Assembly (NCBI GenBank): GCA_002269645.1
Contig: NIVC01003978.1
Location: 1-31,026 of the forward strand
Source of the DNA: Macrostomum lignano
Taxonomy: Eukaryota
Length of the DNA: 31,026 bases
Direction of reading: 5' to 3'
Below the pieces are notes generated by a model. It was not told the origin of the DNA and did no database searches. It saw nothing but the letters and a program-made list of their open reading frames with translations. This document shows, piece after piece, positions 1,805 to 30,768 of the stretch (positions are counted from its first letter, which is position 1; each line of letters begins with the position of its first letter). A program made the translations under genes and the position numbers.

Positions 1805-2227
1805 GCGCCGTGGAACCAGCTCTTTGCCGAGGTGGTCAGCCAGCTGTCCGACTTTGCCCGGCCGGAAGGCGTCGAGGACAAGGTGCAAATGCAGCTGGGC
1901 GACGGGCAGATCATCGAGATCGCCCCGCCGAGCATCGACCGCGCCGGCAACTGGCCGATGGTGCGCCTCGGGCCGCTCGGCTGCGGCAAGCCGGTGGTGT
2001 CGGACACCTACCTGCGCACCGCATTCGCCGACGAGCGCGGCCTGCTTGGCTACGACACCGAGTTCGACCAGGTGCTAGAGAGTATCCTTGGCAACCGGTG
2101 CAACTCGTTTCTAATTGTGCGCGCCTGCTCCGACTATCACGACGGTCAGAAGGGAAACGTGTGGCAGCCGTACGCCAGCATGCAGGCTGCCGCCTTTGCC
2201 AAATCGGTGCTGCTGCAGCTGTCTTAA
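1805..2227 (+). CDS. PNP_UDP_1-domain gene, terminal exon
   Basis: CCCGCAG acceptor at 1804 (phase 0). Encodes APWNQLFAEVV...VRLGPLGCGKPVV...LLGYDTEFDQVLESILGNRCNSFLIVRACSDYHDGQKGNVWQPYASMQAAAFAKSVLLQLS*, the C-terminal 'IRGxSDY...WQPYA..AAA.AK' PNP pattern. Stop TAA at 2225-2227. Confidence 0.88.
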   Translation, partial: APWNQLFAEVVSQLSDFARPEGVEDKVQMQLGDGQIIEIAPPSIDRAGNWPMVRLGPLGCGKPVVSDTYLRTAFADERGLLGYDTEFDQVLESILGNRCNSFLIVRACSDYHDGQKGNVWQPYASMQAAAFAKSVLLQLS

Positions 2228-5531: not shown

Positions 5532-5902
5532 ATGAATGCTGAAGATAAGATTGAAGAAGACGATGAATTGCTGGTAGATGGAATCGATGAATTTGAAGCA
5601 GAATTCGATGAAGATATCATGGAACAACAGCCTCGGCAGTGCGCTATTGTTTAAGCAACAGTGACAGAGACCGTATCATCAGGGCTGCTGATCGTGGGGA
5701 TTACTTTGTGGAACTGGCGCGCCAACTTGGAGTCAAGAGGTCAACAGTGTACACGATTGTGAGGTCAGGGAGAGCGGAAAAGCAGCCTACGAGATTCCGG
5801 ACACCATTCAGGTCAGGCGGCTTCCACCATACAGTTCATTTTTTAGTCCTGTGGAAGGCCGCTCTGAAGAGAGAACTGGCAATTGATGGTCAGGTGTCTT
5901 AA
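5532..5902 (+). pseudogene. Internally deleted Tc1/IS630-family (DDE_3) transposase relic
   Basis: Acidic leader MNAEDKIEEDDELL..., then a frameshift into HTH-like RYCLSNSDRDRIIRAADRGDYFVELARQLGVKRSTVYTIVRSGR. This joins directly to IQVRRLPPYSSFFSPVE (the LPPYSPxLNPIE motif that precedes the catalytic E) and then WKAALKRE in another frame. The two catalytic D regions are missing. Confidence 0.8.
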
Positions 5903-11510: not shown

Positions 11511-14500
11511 ATGGAGGCTCCCAGTGGATTACATGGTTCAAAACCGAGTGAACCACTGGAAGGCAACAGTAACCATGAAGAGAAGCCAAACGCGAAGACA
11601 TTGGAAGAGCAGAAAGAGGAGCTACAGAAATTAGAAATACAAAAAGAAAGCCTAAAAGTAGAAGAAGAAATGGAAGACATTGAAAGGCGGAGAAAGAACA
11701 AGAAATTCGAACAACAGGATTTGAAACTGTCAGAAATTCCAGCACCAGTCGAGGCGCCAGAAGTACCGAGTGAGCTCACTCAGATGAGCAAAACACAAGC
11801 ATTATCTGAAGAGGATATCAAGAAAAACATAGCAAGCCTCTGGACTACGAAAGAGGGGTCACCGCAGCCAGTGTGCACGGTGGATGCGAATGCTGTGGTT
11901 GCAAACGCATCGGGTGAACATCTGCAAAGAGGGATGAAGCTTGAAGGAGGAGTCTGGAAGCAATGCAGCTCGACTCGGCTGCTCGAACCCGCAACCGGCG
12001 TGAAGTTAGTGCAGCCATCTTGTGCATTGCCAGCTGATGAATCGACTTTTGAGTTTTTTAGCAGCGAGAATCTTAACAAATTCGCTGCTTACATGTCTTC
12101 CTCCAGCGTTCAGTCTTTATTCAGCGTGACTGGCATGCTTGCAGCATTTGAACTCGCTGCTTCTGCTAAAAAAGACTTGCGGCCAGGCGAAAGCAAACAA
12201 TCAATGCAGCAGAGCTCTGAGTCTGTGTATGCAAAGTGCACAGTGCACACGGTACCAACGGCTGCGTGTCTGCTGGAGTGCAGCAATCTGCATCTTTCTG
12301 GCAGGGCTATTGAGGAGCTGCAGAACATCGAAGCCATGATGACATGCAAGTCAGATGTCACTGAAGAGGCAGTGAAATTCTTCGATCAGTACGGCAGTCA
12401 TGCAATTGCTGGAATGATTCACTTTGGTGGAGTGCACATCACAACTGCTCATGCGCTGTACCAATCCAGTTCGAGTATGGAAATGATTAAGAATAGCGTG
12501 AGCAAAGCTTTAGCTGCTGCTGTTAAAGGTGGAAATTTATTTATCAAGGTCGAAGCTTCAGTTGGTGCTGCGAGCTCATCGGAAGATAATTCTGCGGACA
12601 AAAGAGAGAAACAGAGTTCGAATGTGCAGCTCAAAAGTCAAATGATCGGAGGAGCTCCAGGAGCGAGCTCGGTGTCCAAGTGGTTCGAAGGTCTTATGCA
12701 AGACAGCAGCACTTGGGCAGTGATTGACGGCAGCAGTGCCACAGTGCCTGTATGGCAGATTGTCAAGGCAAACAGGCAGCACTTCCAGGATGCCGACGCT
12801 CTGGCCAACGCTTTGAAAAAATCCTGGGAGGAGCGCACAGGACAAAAGGCGCCTGCTGAGAGCAGTGATTCTTACAGACAGGCAGTCAGCTGCGTACAGC
12901 AGCGCATTGATGAATTCGCACAGCGAGTGGAAAAGGAAAATTTATCAGAAGAGAATTGGCATCTGCAGCTGCAGACATTGTGCGAGAGAGTAGAAGCAGT
13001 TGAGCAGCTAACAGATGAAGAGAAAAGGGGCGTAAGCTGGACACGGAACCCTCATTTTCATACTATCATGCTAGCTGTCGTTCAAGCTTTGCCTACAATA
13101 AGAGATGCAATTAAGCCAATCAAATCGCACATTTCTTACTTACTCCAAATGAGTGGCAGCTGCAGCTTTCCTATGAAAGGCCGGCTCTATTTCCAGCTGG
13201 CTTGTGAACAGGATGAAAATTACAGCAAGCTCACCGACATGGGACTTGACTGCCCGCTGAAGCTGGCAGAGGCAGTGGAGCAAACTGTGCTGCCAGATCT
13301 TCAGGCTTTTAATGTGCAGCACGAAGGAGACAGTGAGAAGCAGCGCAAAGTGCTGCAGCTGGTTTTCGTCGATCTGAATACAGCGGTGCAGCATCTACTA
13401 AGGCGACTGAAGGAGTCTGGTGATGCAGAAAAGCACTTTTTAACCTGCACCGCTCTTGCTCGCAACTCCTATTCGCTACAAAACGACATTTTTGAGAACC
13501 TTAAAAATCCAGAAAGTCTTCAGCATCTGGCGCAGAGTTTGAAAGAAAGCGCGCAACAACTTTCTGTTATAAAGGAAAGCTCCGAGCCAGAGTTTGTGCA
13601 GGCACGACTGTTGCACACAGCGATGGACGCAAGATTTGACGATGGCTGTTGCTTTCATGTGGCTGACTGGATCTTGCTATTTCAACAAAGCGGCATACAG
13701 TGGGCTGCACCTCTAAATGAAAAACTGACTGATATTGCAGACAACAGCAGCAGGGCCTGGAAGGAACTGAATGAAGTGGTGACGCATCTGTTGAGTAATT
13801 TCAGCGATAATGGACAGCCATTGCAGCTTCCAGAAAATATGGTCAGTGAACTGCGAGACGCTCGATCAAATACTTCTGAAGTGGTTGTGACAAATAGCTA
13901 TAAACAACAATTAGACAAGGATGAGATGGCTCTTATACAGCGGCTTGGGTTGGCAGAATATTTTCCTTCAAAAATCGGCCTTATTGATGTCATGAAAGTG
14001 GGTGATGAGATGTATTCTGCTGCCTCTGATGCCACACGGCTACCTCAGAAGATTTTAAAGTCAATCATTCAGGCGGACTACAAGTCCGGCTTTGAAATCG
14101 TTGAAGCTTGTAACATAAGCCCATCGGAAGGTAAGAAGGCGGTTTCTCAAAGCTTCTGGGATGACGAAGACGATGAGGAGGACATGGCACACGAAGCAAA
14201 AGAAGAAGAAGAAAAAGAAGAAGAGGCAAAAAAACTGCACTACTCAGATGTATTACTGGCTTGTCTTCTGAGCTGCAACATGCGGCTTCAGCAACTCCTG
14301 GCTGAGAAGCTGAATGACTGCAAGCATGCCTTTCCTATCGCATCGGCCTGCGCCGGTTCCCTCAAACTCCGAGTTTGGTCACTACGCAGCTGCTGTTTTG
14401 TGCACCCTGATCCGCAGCAAGGGGGCAAAGTTTTACGGATTTCGTCTGACGTGGACAAATTTCCCATCATTTCCTTTGTGAGACTTGGAAACTCTCAATT

Positions 14501-17500
14501 CTCAAAGTCCAGTCTCATCAACAAGTGCATTAGTGACAAGCATGAGCTTTTTCCTGAGTTCAACTCTAACTCACCCAGCAGAACAATTAGTGATGGATCG
14601 ATAGAGCTGGCATGGGCAGTTCCTGATCCGCAGAACGAGTCTCTGGGTCTGCAGCAAGTCACCTGCGTTCTGAATCTACGAGGAGACGGTCTGCTGCATC
14701 AAGAGCAGCTCAAGTTGCTGTCACGTCTGTCTGCATGTGTTGTTGTAATGCTTCCTGAGAGTGACACAGAAACAGATTCGGTTCTGACTGCACTGTACCG
14801 AATCATGGAACGAAAGAGAAGTATCGTTTTGGTACGCACTTCGGAGAAAGTGCCACAGTGCATGAAGAAGGCCAAGAAGGAATTAGATGCGATGGGAGGC
14901 CTCTTTCATGGCATCACCTGCTGGAGCAAGAAGGATCAAATGTCGCCCAAGAGCATTGCATGTGAGATGAAGAAAGTCCTTTCGAAACTCGATCTTAAAA
15001 TGAAACTATCACTTGATGAAATCTCATCCATGGGTGACTTTCTGAGATGGCAAGTTGACGAAAAGCAACCAGTAGTACAGCAAGCGGTGAAGGCTGCTCA
15101 GACTGTAATGCAGTTTATCGATGAGAAGGAGGATCTGGCTGTCAGCAGGAACAAGAATTTGCCTCTCAGTGGCAGCATGTGGCAGACGATAGCAAAAAGG
15201 AACAAAAACCTGTACAGAGACAACAAACGAATGGATTCAAATAAGAGGGCCAAATGGGTTGAAGCTGAGAGAGACGAAATTCGGAAGGAGAGAAAGCGCC
15301 AATTTCTTTTTTTAAAGGAGCATGGGGAAGCCAACAGCTTTCTTTTTCAATTCATGATGTATGCAAGTAAAGCAACTGATGATTCGTGCAGAGAGATCTT
15401 CATGCAGAGGATGAAGCTCAGTCTTGACAGTCTGTGCCGTAGGAAGCTGCCGCAGCTCACATCTAATTATCAGCAAGCTCTTGTACGGAATAGAGAGGCT
15501 CAGAATAAAACTTTGAATGTAAAGTCCTGCAATGATGAGCTTGTAAAATTGGAAAAAAAGATGGAAGATTCCGCATTTGGATTAGAGCAGGTGTTTCGGG
15601 AGATCGGGCAGACGTACGAAGCTATTCATCACTGTTGCCGCTCGCAAGTTGCGTCAGCAGAAAGCGACTACAAAAGCGTGTTGACAAGTTTCGCAGCAGA
15701 TCTCCTGTTGAAAGGTGAACCTCTCGAAGTGATGGATGGGAATGCGTCTGCATGTCCTGTCGACTGGGTGTCAGCTGTGCTCGAAGCCGTAGAGAAAAAG
15801 GTTGGCAAAAAATCACTACTGGTATTGGCAGTGGTGGGACTGCAGAGCTCAGGAAAATCAACTCTGCTGAATTCTCTTTTTGGGTTGCAGCTTGCAGTGA
15901 GCGCGGGCCGCTGTACGAAAGGAGCGTTTCTTCAGCTGGTGCCGAATGACAAGCAGAAGTCCCAGCTGAATGCAGATTACATTGCCGTCATCGACTCTGA
16001 AGGTTTGAGGTCGTCAGAGATCGCAGAAGGCTCAATGACTCACGATAATGAGTTGGCAACCATGATTATTGGATTGGCAGATGTCACCATCATGAACATG
16101 TACGGAGAAGGACTCACTGACACAAGGGACATTTTGCAGGTGGTCGTGCATGCCTTCCTGAGAATGAAAGCTGCATTTGGAGACATTATCAAGAAGAAGT
16201 CTTGCATTTTCGTTCATCAAAATGTGGCTGCCGTCAATGCAGCTGAAGAGACTCGAGTTGCCAAGGAAAAGCTGTTGACACAACTGGATCAAAGCACTAG
16301 GGATGTAGCAAAAGAGGAACAGCAGCTTGAGGTAACCCGGTTCACAGATGTGATTGAGTTCGCGGATAGTAATATATTTTTCCTGCCTCATCTGTGGGAG
16401 GGCAAGCCGCCAATGGCCCCCGTCAGCCCTGACTATTGCAAGGATGTAATGAAAGTGAAAAGGAGGGTTATTGAACTTTGAAATGTCTCTCTGACAGCAA
16501 CCTCTCCTTTAGCGAACTCTCACAGCGCATAAAAGATCTGTGGAATGCGGTGCTGAAGGAAGACTTCGTATTCAGCTTTCAGAATACAATTGAGCTCCAG
16601 GCGTACCGAGATGTGGAGCAAAAGTTTGCGGAGTTGAAGATGATGATTGAGAAAGCTGCATCAGATTGGTTGTGTAGCAACATCACACTGATTTCTGGAA
16701 GCAGCTCAAGTGAAAAACTCGAGAATAATTTTAGAGATGCAGAAAATAAAATGAGGACTCATATCTTTGGAGTTGCTCAAACGGTGTCAAAGGAAATGAC
16801 CGAGTTCATCTGTAGCCATCGGAAGAAGGAGATCTGTAAGAAGTGGCAGCAGGAAAGGGAAAATGCCCTTAGAGATGCTGCGGACAAAGCAATAAGCGAA
16901 ACCCATAGCAGTCTCATGCGGTCCAAGGAGATACAACGCGTGAAGCTGCTCAATCAGAATGATATGGGAAAATATCGAGAAGAAATTCTGGAGAGAGCAA
17001 AAAGACTGGCCAATGAAAAACAAGGAAAGAAGATGAGTGACCAACAGCTGGAGGTACAGTTCAAGGAGATGTGGAGCAGATTTATGAGTGAAGTGCGGCT
17101 GGAAAAAACTGATGTATGGGATGGAGAGAATATCTTGAAATCTGTTCTTGACCAGAACATCTATAATCAAGGACCACTGCTTAACAAGGAATGGGACGCT
17201 AGACATGCTGTGCCATTTGCTGGGCAGCGAATTTCAGGCTCATTTCCGCTTATGCGTGTTGAAAAAGATGACTTTTCACATGTTACTGGTTGGAATAAGG
17301 TTTGGAAAGAGATTAAAAAGTCATTTGGCTTTGAGACTGCAGAGGGCTATGTACACTCTGAATGCAATGAAATTCTGAAGGAAGCTGATGAAGTGCTTGA
17401 TCAGTCAAAGACCTTGGAGCCGAAAGTAAATTTGAGATTAGCGCTGACTCAAATCGTCAGCAGTATCCGCGATCACGTCTCCATGTTCAACTCCAGTGAC

Positions 17501-18807
17501 ACCGAAGGTAAAAAACCAAAAGTGTCGCTAAAGCCAAACCTCGCCATAAAGCTTTCTGTACACGCAGGCCGCTCTGCTGAGATGATTCTCAGAAAAAGGC
17601 AGGGTGAGTTCGATGCACAGTATGGACTGAAAGCTCAGCTCGAGTCTTTCAAAGAGACCGCTTTTACTGTCTTTAAGAGTCTGTACAAAAAAGAGAGTGA
17701 AGAAGTTATGGCTGCCAACTTTATTGCCAGCAGCATAAAACAAGCTGCGATCGTGCAGGTGCGTCAGTTGGTAGCAAACCGTGTTACACTCGACATAGAA
17801 TCCCAGTTTTCAGGCATGAAGCTTGGGCTCATTAAAGCGATTTTAAGGGACTTAGCAGACAGAGAACCATTTCAAGAATTTCAAGCCTACCTACACAACA
17901 GCAAACAGTTTGCGGAGAGTTGGCTGGAAGCCAAGATGAAGTATTATTTGCTTAAAAAGGATGATGAAACGAAGCGCACACGACTGCGGAATCTCATTAA
18001 AGACAATGCTGGTGTCTTGATTGGAAACGTTGAGAAAGATATCCGCGACGCTGCAGACAGTGTTCATTCAACGAATGCCCAGAATGCGGTGACTGGCTGC
18101 AGCCTGGGTACGTTGGTGCATGTATTCTGTGAAGGACAGAGAACTCTCGGGATAACACCCGACGACTTTGAGCAAATCAGCCAACTTTCTGTCGCAAAGC
18201 TGTCGGATTTTATCCGGGTGTTAAAGACGAAGATCAATGACTTAACTGAGCAAATTGAAACGCAGCTGGACGTCCCACTAGAAGAGTTTGACTGGGGTCA
18301 GAAGAGTCCCCATTTGTGCGCCTGTGAAAGGCTGTGGGGCTGTCCTGAGCAGTGCCCGCACTGCAATGAGCCATGCACAAATATGACCGGATGTGGTTCA
18401 GGTAATAAGCATTGCTGCATGCAACACAGGATTAGGTGTGTGTGGAGTTCTATAGAAACACCGATGAAAACAGATTGGGGTGATTTAGGAACATGTGGCT
18501 ATCATATCGCCGAAAAAGAAGAATTTTGGTGTACTCCACATGTAAGAAAACTGGAAGATGCGAACCTTATGCGAAGCAATATAAAGACAGAAAATACCAC
18601 AGCTACTCGGATTTTCACAAAATATTCCTTGATTGGAATGTCCTGCCGGATCAAGCAATGGATAACTGCGACTATTGGAAATGGTTCCTCGTCACTTTCA
18701 AGGAGGAACTTGAGAATTACTACAACTGGAAAGTCTGTGATATTCCTGACTACGGCGTTACCAAAACCCAAGCAATCGAAAGTCTGGACAAACTGTACAA
18801 GGGCTAA
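11511..18807 (+). CDS. GVIN1: Very large inducible GTPase (VLIG / GVIN1-like), single coding exon, ~2432 aa after repairing two -1 frameshifts (~16477-16479 and ~18524-18535)
   Basis: ORFs 11511-16481, 16478-18817 and 18493-18807 join into one VLIG-type protein. N-terminal: 'ANASGEHLQRG', 'VPTAACLLECSNLHLSGRAIEELQNIE' and 'FFDQYGSHAIAGMIHFGG'. URGCP-like middle: 'LGLAEYFPSKI' and 'HYSDVLLACLLSCNMRLQQLLAEKLNDCKHAFP'. GTPase: G1 GLQSSGKSTLLNSLFG (15837-), G2 GRCTKG, G3 DSEGL, then HDNELAT and FVHQNV. Post-GTPase: 'RIKDLWNAVLKEDFVFSFQNTIE'. C-terminal: 'LWGCPEQCPHCNEPC' and 'DWNVLPD...YWKWF'. The symbol denotes family similarity, not proven orthology. Confidence 0.93.
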
Positions 18808-20492
18808 CTATATATGAAAGATCATCGATAAGACATCTGCTTCTCGGTGACGAGTTGCATTGACGTTTGACAAATTTTCTGTTCAAAATTTATTTGTCCG
18901 AAACTTGAAACAATAATAGCTTACAGCAGTTATAGGTTACAATATAGGTCCTGCTGCTATTAAGATAATTTTCCTAATTATCAATCTCATAGACAGACTG
19001 AATATTTTCGAAATATTTCGGACAAAAAATGAAAACTCTTGCAGTTTTAATTTTGTTTTCTACGCTCTGTTTATTGGTATAAAGTTTTTATCCTTTTAAA
19101 TTACGTAAAAAGACCGGAAATTTTGAAACTGTATGATTCCAATTTTTGTCGCTTTTGCTCGCGGAGTCAGTTTGAACTGCACTGTAGATTTTAACTGATT
19201 CGGTATTTGCAGAAGTTTCCTTTTTGTAGCGTGTTGTTCTTCTCGCTTTAATTTTCTATGTTTTTCATTATGCTATTTAGCAGGTATTCTATTACGAGCG
19301 TATGATTCCGAGCAAATTTTAAACTTGAAAAACAACAATATTTTGCGCTTTTCCTCGTCTTTATCAACTTTTGGTTCTACGTCCTTTTGCTGAAATCCTC
19401 GAAATATTTCTGATTCTTGACTGTGTTCGTCAACTGAGTTCAAAACAATCTAGCTAGCTCGTATCTATATAACTTTTTGGGGATTTTTGTTCTCCTACTA
19501 TTCAAACTTTCCCCCTTTTTAAGCTGTGCTTAACAATGACCTTAACACACTATTATTTAGTAGCTTATTCAATAACTCTCCATTAATCATTTTTTATTAC
19601 ACTTTATCAGTGCTAAACGCCTAAACTATGCTATCGGCGAGTGAATAGCTTGAGAAAGTCGCACAAATTTTCCCGAAGGCAATTAGACACATTCAGCTTT
19701 GTCAAAATTGGAAAATTAGGAAATAAATAATTCGTCTGTGAGCCCGGGATTCTTTTTACAAATCCGATACTTTGTCAGACCAGTCGACGACAGACAGACC
19801 CCACGGTTCTTCACTTGGGTCTTGGTGTCTTCAATTTCTTCAAATTTTTAATGCAACTTCGGCGGTTGTTAACATTCTAGCTAGAGCTTAGTGTTGGCAT
19901 GAAGTCCTAACTACAGTAATTAGCTATTCAAATTACTCCCTCGGACACCGACTAAGGACTGACATGGGTTTACGTAAAGTTGATATCCCCTTTTATGCGA
20001 CGACCCTACAGGCTATATCACATGGATAATTTTGTTTAATCTTTGTTATTCGTTCAATATTATAGGCATGTACGTGTGGCGGTCTTTTATCCACTTTTTG
20101 CGTATTTATCCCGTAGCTATAGCTAATCAATATTAAATATTTATCCAGACAAAAATATACATGTTTTATGCACTAAAACGGACACGATTTTTTCAACTAT
20201 ATTTAATTAGTCCCTCATCACACTATTGGCTTTTCTGCATTCATACTTTCCTATTAAAAGTGAAAAAAACAAATAATGTGAAGATGAAGCATTGAGTTAT
20301 GTTTCAAAACTTTTCGTTCTGCAGTTCTTGAGCTCCAATTTTAAGCTCTCTGGGGCGTTAAGAGCCTGTAATATTTATTTACGGTAACCCACCGATAGCT
20401 GTATGTAGATATCAATTTTCAAGGCATCAAAGTTATAACAGTTATTCAGTTTTTTAGTACAAAACCAGATCGTACAGAACTAAAAGCACACA

Positions 20493-22650: not shown

Positions 22651-22748
22651 CTGCAGGAAAAAAAAGTTATCAAAAATTTGAGCCAAATAATTCCAGTCTG
22701 GACTCATACGCTTGTTTTCACGACGGAGCTGTCTTCTCTCCGACAAAT

Positions 22749-24207
22749 TCACTGTCATCTCTCTGATCAAGTCACTGTCATCTCTCTGACCAAGTCACTG
22801 TCATCTCTCTGACCTAGTCACCGTCATCTCTCTGACCAAGTCAAAATCATCTCTCTGACCAAGTCACCGTCACTTCTCTGACCAAGTCACCGTCACTTCT
22901 CTGACCAAGTCACCGTCACCTCTCTGACCAAGTCACCGTTACCTTTCTGACCAAGTCACTGTCATCTCTCTGACCAAGTCACTGTCATCTCTCTGATCAA
23001 GTCAACGTCACCTCTCTGACCAAGTCACTGTCATCTCTCTGACCAAGTCAAAGTCATCTCTCTGACCAAGTCACTGTCATCTCTCTGATCAAGTCAACGT
23101 CACCTCTCTGACCAAGTCACTGTCATCTCTCTGACCAAGTCAAAGTCATCTCTCTGACCAAGTCACTGTCATCTCTCTGACCAAGTCAAAGTCATCTCTC
23201 TGACCAAGTCACTGTCATCTCTCTGACCAAGTCACTGTCATCTCTCTGACCAAGTCACCGCGTCATCTCTCTGACCAAGTCACTGTCATCTCTCTGACCA
23301 AGTCACCGCGTCATCTCTCTGACCAAGTCACCGTCATCTCTCTGACCAAGTCACCGTCACTTCTCTGACCAAGTCACCGTCACCTCTCTGACCAAGTCAC
23401 CGTCACCTCTCTGACCAAGTCACCGTCACTTCTCTGACCAAGTCACCGTCATCTCTCTGACCAAGTCACCGTCATCTCTCTGACCAAGTCACCGTCATCT
23501 CTCTGACCAAGTCACTGTCATCTCTCTGACCAAGTCACCGCGTCATCTCTCTGACCAAGTCACTGTCATCTCTCTGACCAAGTCACTGTCATCTCTCTGA
23601 CCAAGTCACCGTCATCTCTCTGACCAAGTCACCGTCACTTCTCTGACCAAGTCACCGTCACCTCTCTGACCAAGTCACCGTCACCTCTCTGACCAAGTCA
23701 CCGTCACCTCAAGTCACCGTCACCTCTCTGACCAAGTCACCGTCACCTCTCTGACCAAGTCACCGTCATCTCTCTGACCAAGTCACCGTCATCTCTCTGA
23801 CCAAGTCACCGTCATCTCTCTGACCAAGTCACCGTCACTTCTCTGACCAAGTCACCGTCATCTCTCTGACCAAGTCACCGTCATCTCTCTGACCAAGTCA
23901 CCGTCATCTCTCTGACCAAGTCACCGCGTCATCTCTCTGACCAAGTCACCGTCACCTCTCTGACCAAGTCACCGTCATCTCTCTGACCAAGTCACCGTCA
24001 TCTCTCTGTCCAAGTCAGCGTCATCTCTCTGACCAAGTCACCGTCATCTCTCTGACCAAGTCACTGTCATCTCTCTGACCAAGTCAAAGTCAAAGTCATC
24101 AATCTAACCAATTCATTGTCATCTCTTTAACCAAGTCATTGTTATCTATCTGACAAAGTCAAAGTCAAAGTCATCTCTCTGACCAAGCCACCGTCATCTC
24201 TCTGACA
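22749..24207. repeat. 23-bp minisatellite (~1.45 kb, roughly 60 units) filling an M13 intron
   Basis: Unit CTGACCAAGTCACCGTCATCTCT with variants (CACT/CACC, CAAA, +CG). Confidence 0.97.
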
Positions 24208-25424: not shown

Positions 25425-25477
25425 CCGTACTTATGTACTCCTGTACTTGTGTACTCCCGAACTTGTGTACTCCCGTA
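25425..25477. repeat. 16-bp minisatellite, left part (interrupted by the retrotransposon)
   Basis: Units of CCCGTACTTGTGTACT that continue at 29799-29855. Confidence 0.85.
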
Positions 25478-25690
25478 TGTTGTGTTCTAGTTGATTGATT
25501 AAATTCAATTCAGTTGGAGACACTTGAGTCTCGCTCAATATATTTATACTCATGTGCACGTTGAAAACAGTGTTACGCAATCGAAACAACGATACCATGA
25601 TTGAACGCACGATGCATATAAGGTAATTGAACAATTCTAGCCTCAAAGTTAGTTAGTTACAACACCTAGGCCTGATGCACAGTCACTACA
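25478..25690 (-). repeat. 3' LTR
   Basis: 213-bp direct repeat of 29586-29798, immediately preceded (on minus) by the PPT. Confidence 0.96.
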
Positions 25691-28600
25691 TTCTCCCCCT
25701 TCCGGAAGAGGATAACGCGCCGGTTGCCGTCGAGCTCGAGTTGACCTTCGAAGTTCAGGTGGAGGTGGCGGCTCGCCCGTCCGTGGGGCGGAGCCGGCGG
25801 CAGCGGCAAATCGAACCAGTCGTCCTCTTGGTCGGCCGCGCCGTTGTCAGCCGGTGGGCTGTTGCACTTAACCAGCCGACTCGCTTGCCACTTTGTACCG
25901 TCGGACAGCACGAAGGTGTTGCGCCCTGCTTTGGAGGCGATCTTTAGCGGTTCCTTCAGTCGGGTCGCCAGCTTGTGCGCTCGGTGCGGCGTCTGTCGCC
26001 AGACCCAGTCTCCGGCCTGGAGCATAGAGTCACGAGCTCGCCTTCGCTTGTTGGTGTAGTCGGCATTCTTGGCTTGCCTCTGTGCGATACTGTCTCGCAG
26101 GTCGCTGTCGTCCCGCTGTTGCACTGGAGTTGGCCTGAGCAGCTGCAGTCCGGACCGCAGCTTGCGCCCGATCATCAGCTCGGCTGGAGTCAGCCCGGTG
26201 AGAGCGTGCTGGCTGGTCCTGTAGGTCTTGAGCACCAGGTCGATAGCGTCCTCGAACTTCGCTCCCGCCCTCAGGTTCGCTGCCAGGCCCTCCTTCAGAC
26301 TCCGGTTGAATCGCTCGACTCCGCCGTTGCCTTGCGGGTAGTACCGGCTCACTCGGCTGTGCTTGATGCCCTCGGCTCGCAGGAACTCTTCGAACTCGTC
26401 GCTGACGAACTGGGGTCCGTTGTCGCTGATCAGCATCTTCGGGACTCCCCACCGGCCGAATAGCTTCCGAAGCGTCTTGATGATGTTGGCAGAGGTGACG
26501 GTTTCCATGGCTGCAATCTCCGGCCACTTGCTGTACAGGTCGTGGATCACCAGTAGAAACCGCTGGTGTCGAGGAGCCGCGGCGACCTCGCCGAAGATGT
26601 CGATCTCGACCTTGTCCCACGGTCCATCTGGCCACTCGATTGGTGTCACGATCGTCTGTTGAGGCTTGCCGGACTTCTCCGCCAGAGTGCAGGCCGTGCA
26701 GTTCTTGACGTAGTCCTCCACCTGCCGGTCAATTCCAGGAAACCAGACCGTGTCGCGGCACCGCTGCTTTGACCGAACGACGCCCGGATGCCCTTCGTGG
26801 GCCTCCTCGATGACTTGAAGTCGCAGGCTCGTCGGGATGATCGCGCGTTCACCACGACCGAGGCACTGACCGTTGTTCCAGCAGAACAGCTCGTCCCGGA
26901 CGTTGAAGTACGGCTTTAGAGAGCTGTCCACCTTCGTTGGCCAGCCGCCCGAGATGTACTGCAAAACCGCCTGCAGCACTTCGTCCTCCTTGGTCGCCGT
27001 TGCCAGTGCGTCTGCCGTCAGCGTTGTCTTCGAGTCGACGACTGCGTAGACGTAGCCCTCCTCGTCGGTCTCCTCGGCTGGAACGCGCTCCGTCGTGGCC
27101 CATCTGGACAGCATGTCCGCGCACTTGTTGTCAGCGCCAGGGATGTGCTCAAACCGAACGTCGTAGCCGCGAAGTCTCTCGACCCATCGATGAATGCGAA
27201 GAGGCCTGTGCCCCATGCCTTTCGAGTCGAGCAGAGTTGTCAGGGCCTTGTGGTCGGTGCGCAGCGTTACTCGTCTGCCGTATAGATAGTAGTGCCAGCG
27301 TTCGATGCTCCATACACAGGCCAGGGCTTCTCGCTCTCCGGCTGAGTATCGCTTTTCCGCTGGGCTGAGTGCTCTCGATGCGAACGCGATTGGCACCTCT
27401 TTTTCGTTTTGTACTTGGCTGAGCACTGCCCCCAGTCCGTCTAGACTTGCATCGCAGGTGACGTACGTCTCAGCTTGGCAGTCAAAATGAGCTAACACTG
27501 GGCTGCTGGTTACGGCTGACTTGAGTGTACGGAAGGCTGTACGTTCCCGCTCACCCCAGTGCCAGTCCGCGTCCTTTTTGAGCAGTTGTCTCAGAGGCTC
27601 GGCAATTGCTGAGTAATGCGGTATGAACTTGTGCAAAAAGTTCACTGCCCGAGAAACGATTGAATTTGCGCGACCGTTGATGGCTCAGGAATTCTTAGAA
27701 TTGCGTCGACGTTGCACTTGGTCGGTTTGATGCCGTCTGCAGAGATGACCAATCCGAAGAAATCCACGCTCGCCTGCCGGAATTTGCACTTCTCTCGATT
27801 GAGTGTGAAGCCTTCGCGATGAATCCGCCCTAGGACTTCTCGGAGGTTCTTGTCGTGCTCAGTCTCGTCCTTGCCGTGCACCAGGATGTCGTCCACGATG
27901 TTGATGGCGCCAGGAGCTCCTCGAAGCACCGTCTGCAGGGCTCGCTGGAAGGCAGCTCCGGAGCTAGATAGCCCGAATGGCACCACGGTGAACTGGTACA
28001 GGCCGGCATCGGTGATGAAGCACGTCAGTCCTCGAGAGTCTGGATGCAGCGGAATCTGCTGGTAGCCTTGACGCAGGTCCAGCTTGCTGAAGCACTTCGA
28101 GCCGTTGATGCTGGCCGATAGGTCCTCGATTGACGGTACCGGATAGCGGTCCGCGATCACCGCCTTGTTGACCTGCCGCAGATCCACGCAGAGACGAACC
28201 TTGTTGGACTCCTTCTTGCGCGTCACGACAACGTTGCTAACCCACTCGGACGCGTCGACCTTCTCAATGATGCCCTGTTGCTCCATCCGGCTGATCTCTG
28301 ACGTCACTTCGTCCTTCAGGCCGATCGGCAGCTTCCGCATTGGCTGAGACACTGGCTTGACCGAGGCGTCGATCTTTGTCCGGTGAATGAAGCTCTTGGA
28401 CCGGCCCAGACCGTCGAAGATTCCGGGGAAGTCGCGCTCGATCGTAGTCTCGCTGATGCTCATCACTCTGTTGTCACCTTGGAAGATTTTGAATCCGAGG
28501 GCCTGAAACAGGTCGCGGCCCAGGATGTTCGCTCCTTTGTCGGCGACGTAGAATGTGGCTTCTGTCCTGATGCCGTTGAACGTCACTGGAAGCTCGACCT

Positions 28601-29584
28601 TGCCGATGGTCTTGATCGCAGATCCGCCGTATGCCTCCAGTTTTGTGCTCGTCGGAAGCAGCGGGTGCCTAGCGAAGGACTTCTTGAACGTCTCCATGTT
28701 GAGCAACGAAACGGCAGCACCGCAGTCGATTTGCAGTCGAATCAGCTGTCCGCCCAGACGGCATTCGCAGAATAAGCTGTCTGTGCTCTTGTTGTTCACG
28801 GCCAGGACCGTCAGACTGGACTCTGCAGGCTCTTTGGTGTCGATCGCAGAGACCGCTTTCATGCGGCACATTTTCGCGAAATGGTTCGTCTTGCCGCATC
28901 GTCTGCATTTCTGGCCCATCGCCTTGCATTCGCCCTGTGTCCGTGGTTGCCTCCGCATCGAGTGCACTTTGGACCTGCTGCTGCGGTCTTCTCATGGCGA
29001 GCAGCTGGCTTCGGCTTCTTGCTCAGCGCCTTCACGTGGAGCTCTGGGCCGCTGACCTGCTTGGCATCTTTGATGGCTGCTTCGATTCGCTCAGCCTTCT
29101 TGATGGCGTCATCTAGCGTCAGATCGTCCTCCTCCATCAGGAGTCTTTCCCTAATGCGAGGTACGCAGGTTTTCTCCACAAGTTGGTCTCGAATCATTTC
29201 GTCGTGAAAGGTGTCAAATTTGCAGTTTGTTGCCAGTTCTCTCAGGGCCATCACGTAGTCTCCGATGCTCTCGCCGTCGTGCTGGGCTCGCTGCCGAAAG
29301 GCGAAGCGCTCTGCTATGACGCTTCTCGACGAGCTGAAAATCGCCTTCAGTGCCTTTTTGGTCTCCTGAAGCGACTTGCTTGCATCGACGTTTGCAGCTC
29401 GGCGGCGTCCTTCCTCACCAAGCAGATGCAGGAGGATCGCCTTTTTCCGACTCTCTGATGCCTCTTCGAGAGCTCCAGCTACCAGGAAGTTCTCAAATGA
29501 CTTGATCCACCTTGCCCATGGCACAGGAGGTTCGCCTGGTACTGGTTGAAACTCCGCTGGGTACGGGAGTCCGCTCGTCGCCAT
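25649..29584 (-). CDS. Gag-Pol polyprotein (~1312 aa after repairing three -1 frameshifts at ~28941-28946, ~27648-27650 and ~25785-25788)
   Basis: Gag MATSGLP...ERFAFRQRAQ..GESI..Y...LRELATNC; two Zn knuckles CTRCGGNH...C and CRRCGKTNHFAKMC; protease LQIDCGAAVSLL; RT 'LDLRQGYQQI', 'PFGL', 'NIVDDIL'; RNase H 'TCDASLDGLGAVL', 'EREALA', 'TDHKAL'; integrase 'AHEGHPG..C..C', 'EIDIFG', 'SDNGPQF', 'NGGVERFN'. The repaired tail ELRRSTRARRQPARY runs on into the LTR, stop at 25651-25649. Confidence 0.92.
25691..25702 (-). promoter_or_regulatory. Polypurine tract GAAGGGGGAGAA
   Basis: Purine run directly abutting the 3' LTR. Confidence 0.9.
29574..29583 (-). promoter_or_regulatory. Primer-binding site TGGCGACGAG (tRNA-Ser(GCU)-type)
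   Basis: Starts 2 nt after the 5' LTR. Complementary to the ...CTCGTCG-CCA 3' end recalled for metazoan tRNA-Ser(GCU). Confidence 0.8.
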
Positions 29585-29798: not shown

Positions 29799-29855
29799 CC
29801 GTACTTGCGTACTCCCGTACTTGTGTACTCCCGTACTTGCGTACTCCCGTACTTG
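29799..29855. repeat. 16-bp minisatellite, right part
   Basis: CCGTACTTGCGTACTCCCGTACTTGTGTACTCCCGTACTTGCGTACTCCCGTACTTG. Confidence 0.85.
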
Positions 29856-29961
29856 CCCGTCTCCGACTGCTCGTTGGCCACATTTTCGCTTCTTTTCATT
29901 GGCTGACACCGACATTCTGTCTGTCATTGCACTTTTTGAATGTGTTCGACAAATTAATTAC

Positions 29962-30269: not shown

Positions 30270-30768
30270 CTCGAAACTTCCTAACCTGGAAACTTCCCAA
30301 CCATGGAAACTTCCCAATCTGGAAACTTCCCAACTTTAAAACTTCTCAACCTTGAAGCTTCCCAACCTGGAAACTTCCCAACCTTGAATCTCCCAACCTT
30401 GAATCTCTCAACCTTGAATCTCTCAACCTTGAATCTCCTAACCTTGAATCTCCCAACCGTGAATCTCCTAACCTTGAATCTCCCAACCTTGAATCTCCTA
30501 ACCTTGAATCTCCTAACCTTGAATCTCCCAACCTTGAATCTCCTAACCTTGAATCTCCCAACCGTGAATCTCCTAACCTTGAATCCCCAACCGTGAATCT
30601 CCTAACCTTGAATCTCCCAACCTTGAATCTCCTAACCTTGAATCTCCCAACCGTGAATCTCCTAACCTTGAATCTCCCTACCTGGAAACTTCCCAACCTT
30701 AAAACTTCCCAACCTTAAACTTCCCACCCCGAAACTTCCCAACCTTGAATCTCCCAACCTCGAAACTT
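30270..30768. repeat. 15-bp minisatellite in an M13 intron
   Basis: Units AACCTTGAATCTCC(C/T) flanked by AACCTGGAAACTTCCC variants. Explains the LNLPT/GDSRL repetitive ORFs. Confidence 0.95.

Follow-up and report, generated by a model that had tools for sequence, protein, structure and literature searches.

The 31,026-nt contig NIVC01003978.1 of the Macrostomum lignano assembly GCA_002269645.1 (hereafter, the window) contains on its plus strand an open reading frame (ORF) of 1656 amino acids (aa) at 11511..16481 that is followed immediately, in another frame, by an ORF of 779 aa at 16478..18817. A stop codon is located in frame directly 5′ of the ATG at 11511. When VLIG proteins from Macrostomum, sea urchin, and fish were compared to the window by tblastn, homology was collinear over their full length and switched frame twice, with no homology lost at the switches. 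After two 1-nt corrections, a frame of ~2432 codons was obtained, whose sole stop is the terminal TAA at 18805-18807. The frame is collinear, free of introns, and close in size to the ~2400 aa expected for a VLIG, but it is interrupted by the two 1-nt frameshifts. The best overall explanation, which we regard as probable, is that the locus belongs to the VLIG/GVIN family of giant dynamin/GBP-like GTPases, as a Macrostomum member without introns. From the N terminus, the protein consists of a charged leader, a domain with the MACPF fold, a helical linker, URGCP, a VLIG-type GTPase, a helical region, a Cys/His cluster, and a conserved tail. The features of the gene are as follows.

11511..18807, plus strand: whole intron-less VLIG-family gene, ~2432 codons in three successive frames (ORFs, tblastn, and corrected frame)
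11511..11885, plus strand: N-terminal leader, aa 1-125, highly charged, Lys/Glu-rich in its first ~90 aa (translation)
11886..12860, plus strand: MACPF-like domain, aa ~126-450, the conserved VLIG N-domain (Pfam, profile, AlphaFold2, and Foldseek)
12057..12221, plus strand: first helical cluster, candidate membrane hairpin TMH1, aa 183-237, 55 aa, between core strands of the AlphaFold2 model, with a low-confidence tip
12390..12431, plus strand: MACPF-type signature YGSHAIAGMIHFGG (translation, six-frame pattern search, and family alignment)
12462..12620, plus strand: second helical cluster, candidate membrane hairpin TMH2, aa 318-370, 53 aa, for which the AlphaFold2 model has a helix and then a low-confidence loop
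12642..12764, plus strand: distal MACPF core with MIGGAP (the second Gly-Gly), W..GL, TWAVIDG, and VPVWQIV (conservation in the family alignment)
12861..14237, plus strand: helical linker region, aa ~451-909 (AlphaFold2 helices at the end of the modeled segment)
14238..15110, plus strand: URGCP domain, aa 910-1200 (PF25496, 152 bits, E=3.7e-44)
15273..16439, plus strand: VLIG-type (URGCP-like) GTPase domain, aa 1255-1643 (PF25683, 374 bits, E=7e-112)
16473..16475, plus strand: frameshift 1 (ATT GAA/CT TTG), where a 1-nt correction would restore ..RRVI-E-TLKCLS..
16475..18531, plus strand: helical region of the C-terminal part, read in the second frame (tblastn with Macrostomum, urchin, and tarpon VLIGs)
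18341..18430, plus strand: Cys/His cluster CPEQCPHCNEPC...CCMQHR, conserved in 10 homologues
18529..18534, plus strand: frameshift 2 (..TGT ACT CC/ACA TGT..), a change of the homology frame
18532..18807, plus strand: conserved C-terminal tail (..DYWKWFLVTFKEELE..), read in the third frame up to the TAA stop codon (tblastn)

In addition to the matches listed, the first ORF gave weaker Pfam matches to dynamin, GBP, and RHD3 GTPases. The P-loop GLQSSGKST is intact (15837-15863, aa 1443-1451), and a DSEG motif is present at 15993-16004 (aa 1495-1498). The Cys/His cluster aligns with CTEQCPFCGEPC...CVQHR of the Lytechinus VLIG, and both the cluster and the tail (..YWKWF..) align with urchin and vertebrate VLIGs. 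The Pfam and tblastn results thus confirm the body proposed in a first-pass annotation of this DNA, which was made from the letters alone and described a URGCP region, a VLIG-type GTPase, and a C-terminal Cys/His cluster encoded by an invertebrate; the closest proteins, at ~90% identity, indeed come from M. lignano, a free-living flatworm. No hydrophobic signal peptide was seen in the translation of the N-terminal leader; therefore, the protein is presumably cytosolic, like other large immune GTPases. The helical linker gave no Pfam match above the cut-off and is weakly conserved, solely with Macrostomum and urchin proteins. Precomputed Pfam lists of VLIG homologues include PF26772, PF26773, PF25974, and PF26771, which were absent from the Pfam scans performed here; the C-terminal and linker regions may already carry family names.

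The N-terminal part of the protein was analyzed using an alignment of 31 diverse N-domains chosen from an exhaustive HMMER search with aa 90-530. A relaxed MACPF pattern, [YWF]G[TS]H-x7,8-GG, occurs a single time when all 31 kb of the window are translated in six frames, at 12390-12431. Compared to the classical signature (Y/W)G(T/S)H(F/Y)x6GG, YGSH and GG are present, Ala takes the place of the aromatic residue after His, and the spacer is longer by one residue. The first-pass annotation had placed the motif at the same position and had correctly pointed out both deviations (X7 spacing and Ala at the aromatic position); the flanking sequences it quoted, LSGRAIEEL, KVEASVGAASSS, SVSKWFEGL, and WAVIDG, are all found in the frame of the 11511..16481 ORF. 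The VLIG sequences that we inspected have the same variant spacing. The aligned N-domains are only ~19-25% identical to that of the window, yet the S, the H, and both G of the GSH...GG core, as well as the preceding F, are conserved in at least 90% of them, and the signature is therefore not a chance string. Conservation extends to the distal part of the domain, where, in the alignment, G291 is invariant and G292, W302, L306, T312, W313, and W326 reach a conservation of at least 90%; the second Gly-Gly, the W..L....TW motif, and the VW motif are likewise invariant or conserved at this level.

The Pfam MACPF profile (PF01823) matched aa 230-395 with 34.0 bits (E=4e-8; the gathering cut-off is 21.5), and 9 of the 31 aligned N-domains matched it individually. 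When PDB sequences were searched with the profile of the alignment, complement C8alpha (~8e-6), pleurotolysin B (2e-5), and Plu-MACPF (0.013) were retrieved. The top matches of this search, to gp41, were rejected as artefacts of an engineered SGG linker and a coiled coil. Single-sequence phmmer with aa 1-530 retrieved no MACPF from the PDB sequences, only spurious helical matches. An AlphaFold2 model of the N-domain, calculated with the 31-sequence alignment as input, had a mean predicted local distance difference test (pLDDT) of 76.7 and a predicted TM-score (pTM) of 0.68. It consists of long core strands and two helical clusters, the tips of the clusters being the only low-confidence parts, and the order of its secondary-structure elements is that of a bent central β sheet flanked by two helical clusters (CH1/CH2). 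When the model was compared to the PDB with Foldseek, the best 50 matches were all MACPF proteins. Pleurotolysin B was found at E=1e-10, and the matches included GNIP1Aa, C9, C6, MPEG1, C8, a Bacteroides MACPF, and Mpf2Ba1, as well as astrotactin-2, perforin, TgPLP1, and Plu-MACPF. The N-terminal MACPF-like module suggested by the first-pass annotation is thus supported by Pfam, by the profile search of PDB sequences, and by AlphaFold2 with Foldseek; the comparison of a predicted model with MACPF structures, which the annotation had put forward as a check, recovered the fold.

The two helical clusters are the candidate membrane hairpins. Across 14 tabulated sequences, TMH1 is 51 to 57 aa long and TMH2 is 53 to 62 aa long. 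When the β-amphipathicity of individual sequences was compared to that of shuffled sequences, z values ranged from −1.1 to 2.3, and a family-averaged column profile was used instead. In this profile, the strongest period-2 hydropathy signal of the domain is located at the center of TMH1 and the third strongest at the center of TMH2. Both centers coincide with stretches that AlphaFold2 draws as helix or low-confidence loop. If a MACPF pore forms, these centers would be the membrane-embedded tips of the hairpins. We infer that conserved hairpin lengths together with amphipathic centers match the expected appearance of a MACPF that still inserts, without amounting to proof.

The N-domain is not restricted to the flatworm. 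The exhaustive HMMER search yielded 344 clusters of homologues at 50% identity (E≤1e-3); word-indexed searches with the N-domain or its alignment returned only two to three proteins, so that the exhaustive search was the informative one. As judged by BLASTP with segments of the window, the VLIG body (URGCP/GTPase) is also present, usually together with the C-terminal region, in at least 85 of the 150 proteins that match the N-domain best. Such full-body proteins are typically 2300 to 2650 aa long, with the N-domain at residues ~100 to 550. They include proteins named “interferon-induced very large GTPase 1(-like)” from tarpon, sturgeon, lamprey, and frog, “VLIG-type G domain-containing protein” from bichir, a second frog, and a bird, and “interferon-induced very large GTPase 1-like” from the sea urchin Lytechinus pictus, as well as several paralogues within M. 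lignano. An alligator “interferon-induced very large GTPase 1” model, which is partial (918-948 aa), has the N-domain without the body. The phmmer matches to the N termini of the full-length tarpon, sturgeon, lamprey, frog, bird, and urchin VLIGs had E values of ~1e-18 to 1e-23.

At E≤0.01, Pfam MACPF was not reported in the full-length tarpon, sturgeon, bird, and urchin VLIGs. The N-domain of a frog (Pyxicephalus) VLIG, modeled by AlphaFold2 from the same 31-sequence alignment as the flatworm domain, reached a pLDDT of 80.1 and a pTM of 0.72, and its best 50 Foldseek matches were all of the MACPF fold, led by pleurotolysin B (1e-11); the shared alignment is a caveat here. Since the four clear homologues go unreported while the frog N-domain models as a MACPF, the MACPF profile of current Pfam misses most of the VLIG clade. 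The whole VLIG family, mammals perhaps excepted, has a diverged MACPF-fold N-domain, which in the flatworm copy merely becomes visible to Pfam. Overall, these data show, with a confidence that we consider high, that the gene is a VLIG with the domain order given above and that its MACPF-fold N-domain is an ordinary domain of the family, common to vertebrate and echinoderm VLIGs and less diverged from classical MACPFs in this flatworm lineage. The unusual fusion envisaged in the first-pass annotation is not supported, the same N-domain heading both the vertebrate VLIG 1(-like) proteins and the sea urchin VLIG. Nor was its statement that VLIGs are known mainly from vertebrates supported; a search with the GTPase body revealed that public annotation already includes many VLIG-like proteins, from mussels, scallops, clams, pearl oyster, krill, urchins, and M. 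lignano.

Once its frame is corrected, the flatworm gene shares with vertebrate VLIG/GVIN1 (mouse VLIG-1 and human GVIN1) the ~2400-aa size class, an intron-less coding region, and the order of N-domain, URGCP, VLIG-type G domain, helical region, Cys/His cluster, and tail. It differs from them by its host, in which an interferon system is not expected, and by the two frameshifts it carries as assembled; its N-domain resembles classical MACPFs sufficiently to be recognized by Pfam, which is not the case for those of the tarpon, sturgeon, bird, and urchin VLIGs tested. Within M. lignano, two proteins that UniProt names “MACPF domain-containing protein,” A0A1I8G4K9 and A0A1I8H5V1, are 90-91% identical to the window over the N-domain and linker. 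Both are fragments (626 and 677 aa) that end before the GTPase, and because the models stop short of it, the MACPF-plus-VLIG architecture is invisible in their annotation. The VLIG-type proteins PAA65305.1 and PAA93654.1 are paralogues that have the complete architecture as well; their identity to the window is ~26-27% over the N-domain and 38-40% over the GTPase body. The flatworm protein resembles pleurotolysin B, perforin, C9, and MPEG1/perforin-2 in its predicted bent central sheet, in its two helical clusters (~55 aa each), and in having the YGSH...GG hinge motif as well as the second Gly-Gly. It differs from these pore-forming MACPFs in lacking a signal peptide, being presumably cytosolic, and in having a 2000-aa GTPase instead of a C2, EGF, TSP, or P2-type membrane-targeting domain; its signature spacing is longer by one residue, and sequence identity is only 9-17%.

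Both interruptions of the frame were located by homology. Residues 1670 and 1672 of a Macrostomum paralogue align by tblastn at 16472 and 16475, in different frames; at the second interruption, homology ends in the second frame after EEFWC and restarts in the third frame at STCKKTGRC. Introns were rejected as the cause, since paralogue homology reaches to within 2 to 5 nt on either side of each shift; inspection by eye around 16446-16512 also revealed no GT..AG pair with the correct phase at frameshift 1. Both frameshifts are most simply explained as single-base losses (ATT GAA/CT and ACT CC/ACA), and they are either assembly errors or a very recent inactivation of one copy in a multi-copy family. 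A homologue search for a near-identical copy spanning frameshift 1 found none, the best match being 39% identical over half of the query, with at most 45% identity over shorter stretches. The first-pass annotation had the gene encoding a full-length protein; as assembled, it does not, because of the two 1-nt frameshifts.

The VLIG gene is located in repeat-rich DNA. The other features of the window are as follows.

145-483, 850-1179, and 1832-2227, plus strand: three ORFs (109-131 aa), protein-like in composition
536-775 and 1504-1747: short tandem arrays (periods, 31-54 bp and 36 bp)
5639-5902, plus strand: 87-aa ORF with a Sleeping-Beauty/Tc1-type transposase helix-turn-helix (PF25787, E=7e-6, below the curated cut-off)
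22731-24206: satellite with a 23-bp unit (GTCATCTCTCTGACCAAGTCACC), ~64 copies, 89% match
25425-25477 and 29799-29856: 16-bp tandem unit (CCGTACTTG[T/C]GTACTC, ~3.5 copies) flanking the retroelement on both sides
25666-29584, minus strand: Ty3/gypsy-like long terminal repeat (LTR) retroelement with three ORFs, downstream of the VLIG gene
25666-27645, minus strand: RNase H and integrase of the retroelement
27642-28967, minus strand: zinc knuckle and reverse transcriptase of the retroelement
28859-29584, minus strand: gag (PNMA-like) of the retroelement
30279-30764: satellite with a 15-bp unit, ~32 copies

In the retroelement, the reverse transcriptase ORF shares 4 nt with the RNase H/integrase ORF, which is read in another frame. 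The GC content of the element is ~0.57-0.61, compared to ~0.45 for the VLIG gene, and the flanking 16-bp repeats are probably parts of its two LTRs. The 23-bp satellite accounts for a strong negative GC skew at 23-24 kb, and the 15-bp satellite gives artefactual ORFs with GDSRL repeats. The short tandem arrays are located in the GC-rich (0.54) left end of the window. At E≤1e-3, no Pfam match was obtained for the three left-end ORFs, which could be exons of a gene upstream of the VLIG locus. The 87-aa ORF is probably a DNA-transposon remnant.

How a MACPF fold might work on a giant GTPase can be considered by analogy. Human GVIN1 coats cytosolic Burkholderia, and its functional ORF is only 1808 aa long (bioRxiv 10.1101/2025.03.24.645074). 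We think it conceivable, although somewhat short of an even chance, that GTP-driven assembly concentrates MACPF domains on a microbial or vacuolar membrane, into which the domains then insert. Such a protein would reside in the cytosol, and GTP-dependent self-assembly of its GTPase body would coat an intracellular microbe or the vacuole around it, as GVIN1 does for bacteria. The coat would concentrate the N-terminal MACPF domains at the target membrane, and there the two helical clusters would refold to amphipathic β-hairpins and permeabilize it. The GTPase-gated pore former proposed in the first-pass annotation is an inference, on which only indirect features of the sequence bear. The proposed logic, in which a cytosolic assembly controlled by a nucleotide or signal acts on a microbial or host membrane and leads to membrane damage, resembles that of the GBP1 coatomer and of gasdermin-type pore formers. 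The resemblance is a functional analogy only, for the gasdermins as well, and GBPs have no MACPF domain.

Several observations weigh against this scheme or against parts of it, and the alternatives have to be judged with them in mind. The spacing of the signature deviates from the classical one by a single residue, and TM-scores to solved MACPFs are low (0.3-0.37). Together with the failure of single-sequence phmmer to find a MACPF among PDB sequences, these two points could be taken to mean that the resemblance is a chance motif on an unrelated α/β domain. Three independent methods (Pfam, profile, and Foldseek) nevertheless agree, the frog orthologue used as a target reproduces the result, and 9 of 31 family members match Pfam MACPF on their own; a chance resemblance is thus extremely improbable and effectively refuted, and the modest TM-scores are what one would expect of a domain that has diverged and whose hairpin regions are mobile. 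Accepting the MACPF fold, one may still doubt that it lyses membranes. To our knowledge, the known MACPF pore formers act from the extracellular or lumenal side and none of them is cytosolic. Several proteins with the MACPF fold, such as astrotactin-2, are not known to be lytic, and astrotactin-2 is among the Foldseek matches. The amphipathicity of the two hairpins in this very copy is not significant when compared to shuffled sequences (z values of 0.8 and 1.6). The domain is also highly diverged, to the point that Pfam MACPF is not recognized in four full-length vertebrate and urchin VLIGs. Human GVIN1 can probably coat bacteria without an N-domain, its activity having come from the 1808-aa ORF; because of the size of that ORF, the MACPF domain may be missing in mammals. 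The fold could therefore serve in target or lipid binding or as an oligomerization scaffold, in a protein that, like human GVIN1, makes only a GTPase coat. We consider such a non-lytic role a substantial possibility, albeit one that we would not bet on. The lengths of both hairpins and the β-amphipathic centers are conserved from flatworm to vertebrates and the hinge glycines are nearly invariant, features that a pure scaffold would not obviously need.

The two frameshifts as assembled also count against a working effector encoded by this copy. If they are real, the gene would be a pseudogene, a decaying member of a multi-copy family lying among repeats and transposons. The frame changes twice, independently; the gene has an LTR retroelement, a Tc1-like fragment, and satellites as its neighbors; an exact look-up of the 1656-aa ORF revealed no called gene for this product in public records; and M. 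lignano has at least five other VLIG-type proteins. On the other hand, apart from the two 1-nt events, ~2432 codons are free of stops, and every domain scores as intact with Pfam. Frameshift 1, moreover, is located within a short A run (GAA/CT), where long-read assemblies would typically lose a base. Decay of this copy thus appears to us to be a serious contender, while somewhat less probable than the opposite.

Among the papers covered by a literature search, none links VLIG/GVIN to MACPF or perforin in a meaningful way, although InterPro, AlphaFold DB, or the subscription literature may hold such a link; the only co-occurrences were in two fish transcriptome lists. The GVIN1 study refers only to an unnamed “N-terminal domain” and mentions neither perforin nor a pore (bioRxiv 10.1101/2025.03.24.645074). 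The gene described here is one more member of a known family, fragments of which are already labeled MACPF in UniProt, and the news for this window is modest: another, possibly broken, copy in a multi-copy flatworm family. The family-wide MACPF reading may be unreported so far. Among the large immune GTPases, VLIG/GVIN proteins are understood least, and the GVIN1-Burkholderia study is the first mechanistic paper on them. If the N-domain is a MACPF domain throughout the family, the architecture would be older than interferon by hundreds of millions of years, and a concrete, testable effector hypothesis would follow, namely, membrane insertion driven by GTPase assembly. More speculatively, and in our estimation unlikely, all VLIG/GVIN GTPases, whether of flatworms or of vertebrates, might go back to an ancient event in bilaterians that fused a perforin-like MACPF domain to a dynamin/GBP-like GTPase, and might be cytosolic, GTP-gated pore-forming effectors. 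If this were true, the GVIN “coat” on bacteria would ancestrally have been a delivery platform for a perforin-like pore.

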